Source: Macrostomum lignano (taxonomy: Eukaryota). Taken from it: a stretch of 50,672 nt of DNA. A program made the position numbers and the translations under genes. The notes beneath the pieces were generated by a model. That model had not been told where the DNA came from and ran no database searches. It worked only from the letters and a program-made list of their open reading frames with translations. The stretch's first letter is position 1, and each line of letters begins with the position of its first letter. Positions 33,501 to 49,900 of this stretch are shown here, one piece after another. Where the stretch lies: contig NIVC01004319.1 of assembly GCA_002269645.1 (NCBI GenBank), positions 1-50,672 on the forward strand, in the 5' to 3' direction.

Positions 33501-36500
33501 CTGTCTGTCTGTCTGTCTGTCTGTCTGTCTGTCTGTCTGTCTGTCTGCCTGTCTGTCTGTCTGTCTGTCTGTCTGTCTGTCTGTCTGCCTGTCTGTCTGC
33601 CTGTCTGTCTGCCTGTCTGTCTGTCTGCCTGTCTGTCTGCCTGTCTGTCTGTCTGTCTGTCTGTCTGTCTGTCTGTCTTTCTGTCTGTCTGTCTGTCTGT
33701 CTGTCTTTCTGTCTGTCTTTCTGTCTGTCTGTCTGTCTGTCTGTCTGTCTGTCTGTCTGTCTGTCTGTCTGTCTGCCTGTCTGTCTGTCTGTCTGTCTGT
33801 CTGCCTGTCTGTCTGTCTGTCTGTCTGTCTGTCTGTCTGTCTGTCTGTCTGTCTGTCTGTCTGTCTGTCTGTCTGTCTGTCTGCCTGTCTGTCTGTCTGT
33901 CTGTCTGTCTGTCTGTCTGTCTGTCTGTCTGTCTGTCTGCCTGTCTGTCTGTCTGTCTGTCTGTCTGTCTGTCTGTCTGTCTGTCTTTCTGTCTGTCTGC
34001 CTGTCTGTCTGTCTGTCTGTCTGTCTGTCTTTCTGTCTGTCTGTCTGTCTGAATACCTGTCTGCCTGTCTGTCTGTCTGTCTGTCTGTCTGCCTGTCTGT
34101 CTGTCTGTCTGTCTGTCTGTCTGTCTGTCTTAGTGTCTGTCTGTCTGTCTGTCTGTCTGTCTGTCTGTCTGTCTGTCTGTCTGTCTGTCTGTCTGTCTGC
34201 CTGTCTGTCTGTCTGTCTGTCTGTCTGTCTGTCTGTCTGTCTGTCTGTCTGTCTGTCTGTCTTTCTGTCTGTCTGCCTGTCTGTCTGTCTGTCTGTCTGT
34301 CTGTCTTTCTGTCTGTCTGTCTGTCTGAATACCTGTCTGCCTGTCTGTCTGTCTGTCTGTCTGTCTGTCTGCCTGTCTGTCTGTCTGTCTGTCTGTCTGT
34401 CTGTCTGTCTGTCTGTCTGTCTGTTTGTCTACCTGTCTGTCTGTCTGTCTGTCTGTCTGTCTGTCTGTCTGCCTGTCTGTCTGTCTGTCTGTCTGTCTGT
34501 CTGTCTGTCTGTCTGTCTGTCTGTCTGTCTGTCTGTCTGTCTGTCTGTCTGTCTGTCTGTCTGTCTGTCTGTCTGTCTGTCTGTCTGTCTGTCTGTCTGT
34601 CTGTCTGTCTGTCTGTCTGTCTGTCTGTCTGTCTGTCTGTCTGTCTGTCTGTCTGTCTGTCTGTCTGTCTGTCTGTCTGTCTGTCTGTCTGTCTGTCTGT
34701 CTGTCTGTCTGTCTGTCTGTCTGTCTGTCTGTCTGTCTGTCTGTCAGCCAGTCTCTAGAGCGCCCCCGCCCCGCAGGCCTGGAGTACACCAACTACACCA
34801 ATATCCCGTCCATCGGCGATCGCATCTGGGACGTGGCCGACTGGGCAGTGCCGCCCCAGATGAACAGCGCCTTCTTCGTCACCACCAACGTGGTCATCAC
34901 CAAGAACCAGAGCCAGACCACGTGCGAGGAGGACAAGGACAACAGATGGCACGCCTCGTGAGTGTGGCTGAATAAATTTATAGTTATTGAGGTGCGACTC
35001 ACAGAATATCAATCAATTTTTAGATGCAAGAGCGACGCGGACTGCCAGAAGGGCCACGTGCACATGCTGGGCTGGGGCGTCAAGACCGGGCGCTGCGTGC
35101 GGAGCAGCCGGGAGGCCAACCTCACCATCTGCGAGATCTACGGCTGGTGCCCCACCGAGAGGGATCAGCTGCCGCTGGGAGATGACACGGTGACTGACTG
35201 ACTGACTGACTGACTGACTGACTGACTGACTGACTGACTGACTGACTGACTGACTGAATTGAGTGAGTGGGTGACTGACTGACTGACTGACTGACTTGAG
35301 TGAGTGGGTGACTGACTGACTGACTGACTGACTGACTGACTGACTGAATTGACTGACTGACTGACTAACTGACTGACTGACTGACTGACTGACTGACTGA
35401 CTGACTGACTGACTGACTGACTGACTGACTGACTGACTGACTGACTGACTGACTGACTGACTGACTGACTGACTGACTGACTGACTGACTGACTGACTGA
35501 CTGACTGACTGACTGACTGACTGACTGACTGACTGACTGACTGACTGACTGACTGACTGACTGACTGACTGACTGACTGACTGACTGACTGACTGACTGA
35601 CTGACTGACTGACTGACTGACTGACTGACTGACTGACTCACTCACTCACTGACTGACTGACTGACTCACTGACTGACTGACTGACTGACTGACTGACTGA
35701 CTGACTGACTGACTGACTGACTGACTGACTGACTGACTGACTGACTGACTGACTGACTGACTGACTGACTGACTGACTGACTGACTGACTGACTGACTGA
35801 CTGACTGACTGACTGACTGACTGACTGACTGACTGACTGACTGACTGACTGACTGACTGACTGACTGACTGACTGACTGACTGACTGACTGACTGACTGA
35901 CTGACTGACTGACTGACTTGAGTGAGTGGGTGACTGACTGACTGACTGACTGACTTGAGTGAGTGGGTGACTGACTGACTGACTGACTGACTTGAGTGAG
36001 TGGGTGACTGACTGACTGACTGACTGAATTGAGTGAGTGGGTGACTGACTGACTGAATTGAGTGAGTGGGTGACTGACTGACTGACTGAATTGAGTGAGT
36101 GGGTGACTGACTGACTGACTGACTGACTGAATTGAGTGAGTGGGTGACTGACTGACTGACTGACTGAATTGAGTGAGTGGGTGACTGACTGACCTACTGA
36201 CTGAATTGAGTGAGTGGGTGACTGACTGACTGACTGACTGACTGAATTGAGTGAGTGGGTGACTGACTGTCTGACTGACCGAGGGGATGTATCATTTATG
36301 CAAAGCTAGCTGCATTGGAATAGCGGGATCAAATATTAACCAGTTTCTCGGCCCCATCGTGGCCAATTTTAGTTACTAAATTCAGTTTCACCCCAGCAAT
36401 AGCCTTGGTGAGATGACGGGGAATAAAAGCATTGCATGGGATAAGAGAGGCAGAGAGAGTCTGAGAAGAAAATTTGTAATTGCAAACAGTTCTATAAAGT

Positions 36501-46904: not shown

Positions 46905-49900
46905 ATGTTGTTCTTCACCTCAGACCAGTGCAGCGAGGCGGAGGTGAACCAGACGATGGCGCAGCACGATCACAGCTACCTCCGTGTTGAGCAGTCCAAC
47001 AGTTTCGTCATCCTGCCCATATCGCTGGTCGCCCTGCTGCTCAACTCGCTGTCTCTGTTCGTCTTTGCCAGACAGAAGTTCGACAACAAAGCTGTCCGAT
47101 TTTCGCTGCTGTCCATCTCCAGCACCGAGGTCTGTCTGCAGCTGGCCCTGATCGGAGATCGCCATCGTCAAGAGCTACTTTGAGCACCGGCACAGCCCCG
47201 CCGCCTTTGCCGTCACCAGCTGCATCCATGTGGCAATTAACGCTCTGGTGTCCATCCGGAACTGGAATCTGCTGCTGATCAGCGCTGCTCGGTGCGAGGT
47301 GAGGCGCCTGGTTGGGTGTTTGATGAGCTCTACATTGTAACCGGTAACTAGGCACTGGAGCTCAGATCCCCTTGTAGATATCAGTTCCCCTTGTAGATTT
47401 CAGATCCCCTTGTAGATATCAGATCCCCTTGTAGATATCAGATCCCCTTGTAGATATCAGATCCCCTTGTAGATATCAGTTCCCTTTGTGGATTTCAGAT
47501 CCTTGTAGATTTCAGATCCTCTTGTAGAATTTCAGATCTCCTTGTAGATTTCAGATCCCCTTGTAGATATCAGATCCCTTTGTGGATTTCAGATCCCCTT
47601 GTAGATTTCAGATCCCCTTGTAGATATCAGATCCCCTTGTAGATATCAGTTCCCTTTGTGGATTTCAGATCCCCTTGTAGATTTCAGATCCCCTTGTAGA
47701 TTTCAGATCTCCTTGTAGATTTCAGATCCCCTTGTAGATTTCAGATCCTCTTGTAGATTTCAGATCTCCTTGTAGATTTCAGATCTCCTTGTAGATTTCA
47801 GATCCCCTTGTAGAGTTCAGATCCTCTTGTAGATTTCAGATCCCCTTGTAGATTTCAGATCCTCTTGTAGATATCAGATCCCTTGTAGATATCAGATCTC
47901 CTTGTAGATTTCAGATCCCCTTGTAGATTTCAGATCTCCTTGTAGATTTCAGATCCCCTTGTAGATTTCAGATCCCCTTGTAGATTTCAGATCCCCATGT
48001 CGATTTCAGATCCTCTTTTTATACGCTGGCTTAGATGCATCATGCAAAACAAGCTGCAGGAACTCTGGGGCGCTCTGTTGGGCAGCTTTCATCATCCCGA
48101 CATCCCACCACCGGATAGGAAATCGCTAGGGGTGATGAGAGGGGCTCAGGATGGGAAGAAATGAGAATTTTTATTCATCAGCTCAGGATGTCCCCTCGTC
48201 GGCAGTCACCTGACATCAATCTGACTAAAAAAAGTTATTAACAAATTCTTTGGACTAAAATACCTTTGCTTTCAGCCAGATCAGCAAAGGAAATTAGGTG
48301 AGGCAGACGCGGTGTTATAAAATCCTCGGATTTCATTTTGCTCCGCAATTCTACAAAAAAATTGTTTCGTTGGCAGGTCGCAGCTCAGCTTTTCTCCATT
48401 GAAGTTTTTCAAATCAATAGTTTGTTGGCCTCGGTCTGACTGACTGACTGACTGACTGACTGACTGACTGACTGACTGACTGACTTAAGTGACTGACTGA
48501 CTGACTTGAGTGACTGACTGACTGACTGACTGACTGACTGACTGACTGACTGACTGACTGACTGACTGACTGACTTGAGTGAGTGGGTGACTGACTGACT
48601 GACTGACTGACTGACTGACTGACTGACTGACTGACTGACTGACTGACTGACTTGAGTGACTGACTGACTGACTGACTGACTGACTGACTGACTGACTGAC
48701 TGACTGACTTGAGTGACTGACTGACTGACTGACTGACTGACTGACTGACTGACCGACTGACTGACTGACTGACTGACTGACTGACTGACTGACTTGAGTG
48801 AGTGGGTGACTGACTGACTGACTGACTGACTGACTGACTGACTGACTGACTGACTGACTGACTGACTGACTGACTGACTGACTGACTGACTGACTGACTG
48901 ACTGACTGACTGACTGACTGACTGACTGACTGACTGACTGACTGACTACTGTTCTCCCGCCAATCCGCAGGTGGTGGCGAGGCCACTCGCATCCCGGCGC
49001 TGCCTGATCTTCAGTCGCGGCCGCCTTGCCCTCGCCTTTGGCAGTATCATCGTCCTCGCCTTCGCTCTGGCTTTGCTGGCCGCCCTGGCCGACAAGGGCG
49101 TGCTGTGTAGCAACTCGGCCGAGCTGCTGGCTGTGAGAACGAGCTCATGTCCCGGCCGGCCCGGCCGCGTGTTTAAGGTTTGTCACCCTCACTGGGGAAC
49201 TGGAGTACCTTTCCCTCCAGTGATAAGAAATATCTATCTGTAGATACCCATTTGGAGATACCCATCTGAAATACTCATCTGGAAATACCCATCTGGAAAT
49301 ATCCTTCTGGAAATACCATCTGGAAATACCCATCTGGAAATACCCATCTGGAAATATCCTTCTGGAAATACTCATCTGGAAATACCCATCTGGAAATATC
49401 CATCTGGAAATATTCATCTTAAAATACCCATCTGTAAATACCCATCTGGAAATACCTATCTGGAGATACACATCTAAAAATACCCATCTGGAGATACACA
49501 TCTAGAAATACCCATCAGGAAATATCCATCTAACCGGGAAAGGCTCTAATTTACACCATTGTTATTCAACTCGCTCACCCACCCAGGTGCCCGAGACTCC
49601 GTGGTGGTGATCAGATCCCTGCTGCAAACGAACTGGACGAGTGGGCGATCTACGTTTTCAATCCTGATCCCAACCGTGCTAATTCCCTTCCCAACTGGGA
49701 TCATGTGGGTCAGAATTCGCTGCGCCAGCCTGCGCTGCCGCAGTCCGCTGATGAGCCAACCGAGGCACCGGGAGACACCGGGGGAGAAGCCGTCACGCGC
49801 GGCGGTCAGGACGAAAATCACCGGGGGATCGAAGCTGACCTCGCAGCGACAGCCAGATGGTGCTGGCTTGGCCATCCTGTTCTGCATCTGCGAGATCCCC

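Follow-up and report, generated by a model that had tools for sequence, protein, structure and literature searches.

Two (GACT)n microsatellites in introns of unrelated genes of Macrostomum lignano share a complex interruption, a 13-nt block (TGAGTGAGTGGGT) that is joined to the surrounding GACT units at the same junctions in both arrays. The arrays lie on contig NIVC01004319.1 (assembly GCA_002269645.1), the whole of which, 50,672 nucleotides, was analyzed and is referred to here as the window; array 1 is in intron 3 of a P2X gene and array 2 in intron 1 of an unannotated gene for a seven-transmembrane (7TM), G-protein-coupled receptor-like protein. On comparison of the sequences, a common origin of the block in the two arrays, i.e., identity by descent, is well supported, as the initial annotation of this DNA had proposed: among 3000 simulated array pairs, none had a common interruption of at least three edits, compared to five edits for the real block. 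The explanation that we favor, with somewhat less than even confidence, is that the block arose once and reached the second array by a single homology-driven copying event independent of transposons, after which the two arrays evolved separately.

A count over the window located 14 exact copies of the 15-nt sequence TTGAGTGAGTGGGTG, the core of which is the block, all on the + strand. Twelve are in the P2X intron 3 array (at 35259, at 35296, and ten between 35918 and 36247) and two in the 7TM intron 1 array (at 48575 and 48794). The initial annotation had recognized the same 15-nt interruption in both (GACT)n arrays from the copies at 35296, in the 35917-36265 region, and at 48575 and 48794, all of which stand; the copy at 35259 had been missed. 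By chance none is expected, and no copy of TTGAGTGAGTGGGTG occurred in 100 dinucleotide-preserving shuffles. All 14 copies of the block are identical across the 15 nt. Laid out in units, the block reads T-GAGT-GAGT-GGGT between runs of GACT, that is, one inserted nucleotide followed by three variant units (GAGT, GAGT, and GGGT), and its edit distance from the pure GACT repeat is 5, matching the five differing positions counted earlier. The placing of both arrays on the sense strand, about 13 kb apart, was also correct, as both host genes are on the + strand and the arrays are separated by 13.2 kb from start to start and 12.2 kb from end to start.

P2X intron 3 (35190-37875, + strand) was delimited from tblastn exon mapping, the sequence, and repeat coverage; its donor is ACG/GTGACT and 83% of its length is tandem repeat. 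Array 1 (35191-36279, + strand), of ~269 units, runs from the third base of this intron to a unique right flank (36280-36709, + strand). Intron 1 of the 7TM gene (47299-48970, + strand; GAG/GTGAGG ... CCGCAG/G) is 70% tandem repeat and contains a unique left flank (48018-48435, + strand) followed by array 2 (48436-48951, + strand), of ~128 units, which ends 19-22 nt ahead of the 3′ splice site, the last pure GACT unit being at 48947, 22 nt from the acceptor. Both arrays were defined with Tandem Repeats Finder (TRF) and by unit layout, TRF reporting a period of 4 for each with 269 and 128 copies and 91-93% matches. The rest of the two introns is unrelated and consists of 23-bp and 19-bp minisatellites and unique DNA.

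The arrangement of the block differs between the arrays. In array 1, GACT stands before four of the 12 blocks and GAAT before the other eight. Two lie near the 5′ end of the array, 37 nt apart, the first GAAT-prefixed (35260-35272, + strand) and the second GACT-prefixed (35297-35309, + strand), and a GAATT at 35346-35350 (+ strand) corresponds to a GAAT-type block minus GAGTGAGTGGGT (12 nt, three units), probably through deletion. Ten blocks form a higher-order repeat zone (35919-36260, + strand), in which three GACT-prefixed blocks are followed by seven GAAT-prefixed ones at a spacing of 29-41 nt (mode 37). Array 2 has no such regular spacing. Its two full copies of TGAGTGAGTGGGT are at 48576-48588 (+ strand), with 16 pure units on either side, and at 48795-48807 (+ strand), with 10 pure units before and 35 after. 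It alone carries short relatives of the block, TAAGT at 48486-48490 and TGAGT at 48507-48511, 48653-48657, and 48710-48714 (all + strand); judging from the unit layout, the TGAGT forms would be 8-nt deletion derivatives of the full block and TAAGT a point mutant of one TGAGT. In the layouts, only the plain full block is found in both arrays, and no derived subtype is common to them.

With respect to splicing signals, array 1 abuts the 5′ splice site of P2X intron 3 (ACG/GTGACTGACT), and array 2 supplies the last CTGAC of the 7TM intron, whose A at 48945, 25 nt upstream of the acceptor AG, is branch-point-like and may serve as the branch point. The block itself contains the consensus donor GTGAGT followed by GGG, and the twelve GTGAGT sites within P2X intron 3 could be decoy or U1-binding sites. 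TGA occurs in every reading frame of the sense strand of (GACT)n.

For chance sharing of interruptions, 3000 pairs of independent arrays of the real sizes were simulated with substitutions, 1-nt indels, and slippage of 1-10 units, up to the observed purity and under three rate mixes. Edit distance was used in preference to a period-4 deviation statistic for shared k-mers, which single-base indels inflate. An interruption of two edits was shared in 2-3% of the simulated pairs, and one of three or more edits in 0 of 3000. Given this result and the five edits of the real block, an independent origin under unbiased mutation is very unlikely. Other real tetranucleotide arrays contain mostly single-substitution units as interruptions. 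The private derivatives present in each array argue for the block being real in both.

Under the favored explanation, the block would first have formed once within a (GACT)n array and would then have been copied from one (GACT)n tract to another in the same orientation, 12 kb away on that chromosome. The probable route would be ectopic gene conversion or a template switch occurring while DNA was replicated or a break repaired, for which the long perfect GACT tracts would provide the homology. Afterwards, the arrays would have evolved apart through slippage and unequal exchange, array 1 gaining the GAAT-prefixed subtype and amplifying the block together with 5-6 GACT units into a higher-order repeat of ~37 bp, and array 2 building up the shortened forms TGAGT and TAAGT as the pure tracts between them grew. 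Because only the plain block is shared, the derivatives being private and the architecture different, the arrays point to one past copying event rather than to ongoing homogenization; the "active" exchange process suggested in the initial annotation is not supported, in view of the lack of a common derived subtype. Homology-driven copying is the most economical choice since no carrier is visible, and we infer the mechanism and direction of the copying as well as its occurrence in cis. The sequence does not discriminate among ectopic gene conversion, circular DNA, and a carrier element, the three routes named previously; transfer between loci fits what was found, and no carrier sequence is visible next to either array.

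The DNA examined amounted to ~160 kb of the 764-Mb assembly, ~110 kb of it outside the window. This comprised a duplicated pair of loci with one paralogous P2X locus (L001 and L013), another paralogous P2X locus (L002), and L011, a 98.5-99.5% identical duplicate of window 2426-25316; a further sequence, L012 (NIVC01004319.1), is identical to window 2806-26682, i.e., it is the window itself. No GACT run of at least three units and no copy of the block was present in the ~110 kb of L001, L002, L011, and L013, so that the sample holds only two GACT arrays, 12 kb apart. The paralogous P2X introns contain entirely different arrays, and the older P2X loci L001, L002, and L013 are without a GACT array.

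Comparison of L001 with L013 bears on the age of the shared block. The unique DNA of this pair is 1-5% different, and their orthologous microsatellites differ almost completely in interruption pattern and in length, for example, L001 15414-16009 compared to L013 14708-15095 and L001 22075-22430 compared to L013 19468-19723. A (GATA)n pair has eleven interruptions compared to one, and an (ACAG)n pair four compared to none. As duplicates that have diverged by only 1-5% differ almost fully in their interruptions, interruptions are short-lived in M. lignano, and this fast turnover indicates that sharing of the block dates from a fairly recent event, ancient shared ancestry being unlikely.

Searches around the arrays gave no indication of a carrier. 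No similarity was detected by blastn at word size 9 among all four array flanks (36280-36709, 48018-48435, and the exon sides), nor did the flanks match L001 or L002 (~60 kb of M. lignano DNA, blastn), the only sequences common to the window and these two loci being P2X exons and simple repeats. Inverted repeats were lacking around both arrays, and the window as a whole gave no match to tRNA genes or Rfam families. The sole transposon open reading frame (ORF) in the window, that of a long interspersed nuclear element (LINE) at 14793-16196, is 19 kb from the arrays. The marks of a transposon-borne family (shared non-repeat flanks; terminal inverted repeats, a tRNA-like head, or coding sequence) were absent from the arrays, as was any homology beyond the repeat of the kind left by segmental duplication. 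Nor are the two introns near-identical throughout with target-site duplications, as introner-like elements are; only the microsatellite is common to them. In view of the lack of flank homology, inverted repeats, and tRNA or Rfam matches, both a segmental duplication and a recognizable carrier are unsupported.

The LINE is 5′-truncated (14693-16180, - strand), has a 467-aa ORF with an RNase H domain, and lies within a 17-bp minisatellite of intron 2 of the diphthine synthase gene, DPH5. It is bounded by the duplication ACCCAGGGAC, and the empty site is found in the 99%-identical duplicate contig (L011, about 11640-11900); as it is absent from this duplicate, the insertion represents a recent retrotransposition. 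Searches with LINE proteins matched UniRef entries only. The 3′ tail of the LINE on the + strand is TTGACTTACTTGACTTAG, a short GACTT-like repeat. This tail was considered as a seed of the GACT arrays and rejected, the array flanks having no similarity to the LINE 3′ untranslated region. Copying of the block from a 5′ splice-site region of a P2X intron was likewise rejected, as GTGAGTGG, the one stretch that the block has in common with the beginning of intron 1, is too short for such a claim. The 11-mer GTGGGTGACTG, common to the block and the minus strand of the 17-bp minisatellite (14140-16254), was left unused, ~0.4 chance matches being expected by our own estimate. The short form of the block also has TGAGTGAC in common with the 15-bp minisatellite TGTCTGAGTGACCCG (32772-33099). 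This match is short enough to have arisen by chance, as is the GTGGGTGACTG match (17-bp minisatellite, 14140-14695/16182-16254); as motifs, the two hint at a common vocabulary among the arrays.

A second case was found in (ACAG)n arrays on different contigs, which have in common an 8-nt variant, ACACTAAG (reverse complement CTTAGTGT), three edits from the pure repeat. The sharing of complex interruptions is, therefore, not peculiar to the GACT pair. The variant occurs in non-homologous introns, in P2X intron 1 in the window (33452-34745, antisense) and at 9411 and 11415-11882 in L002 (sense). Its core also fills a 32-bp array in the window (18723-19747), and relatives one step away are ACACCAAG, with nine copies in the window at 1038-1522, and ACACTGGG, in 12-mer arrays in L001 (2-1727 and 7155-9632). 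These motifs give the (ACAG)n/(TCTG)n-class arrays the appearance of a dispersed family in which repeats of 4, 12, and 32 bp are connected. No sharing of complex interruptions was detected among six (GATA)n arrays. The intron-to-intron specificity that had been proposed for the exchange is not supported, since the ACAG variant is on opposite strands and tandem repeats make up about half of the contig, in intergenic DNA as well: 49% of the window bases are in 37 tandem arrays with units of 2-226 bp. This share is about three times the genome average, M. lignano having 13-15% tandem repeat and 1.3% simple repeat genome-wide.

Several points weigh against a single copying event in cis. The sharing in the ACAG arrays needs neither cis closeness nor a common strand, so that cis proximity is not required. 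The boundaries of a conversion tract are unmarked in the GACT arrays, since the surroundings are pure repeat. With ~160 kb of 764 Mb sampled, GACT arrays elsewhere in the genome may often carry the block. The near-identical duplicate of this locus, NIVC01001398.1, was read through L011 only to 2 kb before P2X. Neither P2X nor the 7TM gene has an annotation on that contig; a search with the 7TM protein gave no match, and one with the C-terminal part of P2X among 1.84 billion representative sequences gave only a UniRef entry. The assembly was polished with short reads by Pilon, our analysis being of the assembled sequence.

A clearly less probable, although still credible, alternative to one copying event is that both arrays belong to a family of compound repeats, (GACT)n plus block, dispersed over the genome. 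The block would then have originated at a third locus, or else inserted DNA derived from arrays would have seeded one array or both as a whole. The source could be reintegrated extrachromosomal circles, templated insertion at breaks, or a mobile element with its non-repeat part missing or unrecognized. Such a family is consistent with the presence of ACACTAAG in (ACAG)n arrays on different contigs together with its relatives ACACCAAG and ACACTGGG and the 32-bp array with the same core, with the 49% tandem repeat in the contig compared to 13-15% genome-wide, with the absence of both 7TM introns from a paralog, and with the recent LINE insertion into a minisatellite, its 3′ tail being GACTT-like. 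Precedents for the spread of satellites and for microsatellites borne by transposable elements are described in four reports (PMC7403614, PMC11610590, PMC2887409, and PMC7492417). A dispersed family is harder to reconcile with the lack of a further GACT array in the ~110 kb of other M. lignano DNA, with the absence of common flanks and transposon hallmarks, and with the difference in architecture, a 37-bp higher-order repeat as opposed to isolated blocks, by which neither array looks like a recent whole copy of the other.

Broader in scope, and rather unlikely, is the proposal that micro- and minisatellite DNA is copied between loci throughout the M. lignano genome independently of transposons, by circle reinsertion or promiscuous template switching. 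If this were true, introns would be filled with repeats (70-83% here), and the GACT block and the ACACTAAG block would be footprints of the process; it may also contribute to intron gain, given that the 7TM introns are missing from the paralog.

Convergence is improbable. It would call for a biased or templated mutation path in (GACT)n that repeatedly yields T-GAGT and then T-GAGT-GAGT-GGGT, possibly aided by selection for 5′-splice-site-like GTGAGT plus GGG in sense intronic RNA. The 2-edit short form, GACT-T-GAGT-GACT, was found at no fewer than five (at least five) unrelated metagenome loci in small GACT runs and is, as expected, simple enough to recur independently, in keeping with the 2-edit sharing in 2-3% of simulated pairs. 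Analogous interruptions, CT-TAG-TG in (TCTG)n compared to CT-TGAG-TG and CT-TAAG-TG in (GACT)n, would also fit such a path, as would the GTGAGT and following GGG held by the block, P2X intron 1 beginning with GTGAGTGG. The full 22-nt block context, in contrast, had no exact match in 241 million metagenome records, and interruptions of at least three edits were common to none of the 3000 simulated pairs. The expected intermediates T-GAGT-GAGT and T-GAGT-GAGT-GAGT are missing from both arrays, and 14 of 14 copies are identical over 15 nt, further arguing against convergence.

An artifact, in which Illumina reads of one GACT array were mis-mapped to the other in Pilon polishing and thereby transplanted the block, is slightly less probable again. 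The assembly, Mlig_3_7, is a Canu assembly of PacBio reads that was polished by Pilon with Bowtie2-mapped Illumina and RNA-seq reads (PMC5730564), and the contig likely retains residual indel errors, such as the frameshift in 7TM exon 1 near 47155. Mis-mapping does not readily account for the three TGAGT and one TAAGT of array 2 alone or the GAAT subtype of array 1 alone, and the blocks of array 2 stand amid 10-35 pure units compared to 3-6 units between most blocks of array 1, so that reads from the higher-order zone would misfit there. The joins are also correct, as exons of a single gene stand on both sides of each array; neither array marks a chimeric join. An origin of the two arrays from a segmental duplication of DNA with an ancestral array in it, for which the same orientation and the same contig might speak, is effectively refuted by the lack of flank similarity at word size 9, the unrelated host genes (P2X and 7TM), and the old P2X intron 3 in L001 without a GACT array.

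As for the genes of the window, the P2X exons match Macrostomum lignano UniRef proteins exactly, and the spliced model of DPH5 is the same as NCBI PAA47831.1. P2X intron 3 is an old intron that is also present in the paralog in L001, where the GACT array is absent. The 7TM gene (46905-50200) is unannotated and has a 1-nt frameshift in exon 1 near 47155, likely a residual indel error of the assembly. Its product has seven hydrophobic segments and an NFFVY motif and gave no Pfam match. P2X and the 7TM gene are adjacent in both the window and L002, where the 7TM paralog (about 5100-6600) is an uninterrupted single ORF of 484 aa that aligns across the 7TM intron-1 junction. Both repeat-filled introns of the window 7TM gene (47299-48970 and 49177-49587) are absent from this paralog, through either gain in the window copy or loss in L002. 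Nearly every intron in the window has its own private minisatellite. At 20072-20675, a 310-bp unit that occurs twice (93% identical) alternates with long (TC)n tracts, and the start of this unit is found in additional copies near 20900-21120.

Models of microsatellites usually assume that they evolve only in place, through slippage. A complex interruption common to two non-homologous arrays is direct sequence evidence for the occasional copying of array DNA between loci, and it bears on the use of interruptions as markers of descent. Copying between arrays may help explain the repeat-packed introns of M. lignano, a regeneration model whose genome is unusually rich in repeats and hard to assemble. 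The present evidence, one clear pair and one parallel case in ~160 kb, is a lead and not a demonstrated new process. A search of the literature found no mention of GACT repeats in Macrostomum. Among known systems, interrupted and compound microsatellites turn into higher-order repeats as slippage and unequal exchange act on them, and here, too, a variant unit was trapped and amplified together with its pure neighbors, matching the ~37-bp period at 35919-36260. This explains spread inside one array but not the identity between two loci.

For spread between loci, the closest comparison is with the X chromosome of Drosophila simulans and D. mauritiana, where Rsp-like repeats have spread into clusters of the 1.688 satellite (Sproul et al. 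2020, PMC7403614). The proposed routes are interlocus gene conversion, template switching, or reintegration of extrachromosomal circular DNA (eccDNA), for which homology of the abundant repeat acts as the seed, followed by local expansion through unequal exchange and by higher-order repeats (PMC7403614). In both systems, separate loci that had an abundant repeat beforehand now have within it a rare variant with identical junctions. The Drosophila case differs in its monomers of 100-360 bp, its dozens of loci, the experimental demonstration of eccDNA, and the comparison of syntenic empty sites across species, whereas that of M. lignano concerns a 4-bp unit, a 13-nt block, and two known loci, and is drawn from sequence alone. 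In Tribolium castaneum, according to the accessible part of the report (PMC11610590), tandem repeats are similarly dispersed in euchromatic, gene-rich DNA, with eccDNA and interlocus conversion discussed as routes; these are genome-wide bursts of satellites with long monomers as opposed to one pair of microsatellite arrays. The lepidopteran RTE (PMC2887409) and oyster Helentron (PMC7492417) families, as far as the available portions of those papers describe them, resemble the GACT case in that the same repeat is found at many loci, carried by a mobile element. They are defined by shared non-repeat flanks, in contrast to the GACT arrays, which have unique flanks and adjoin no inverted repeat, tRNA, or transposon coding sequence. 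The shared block is thus a microsatellite-scale instance of a phenomenon already known from satellites in other animals and does not constitute a new category.

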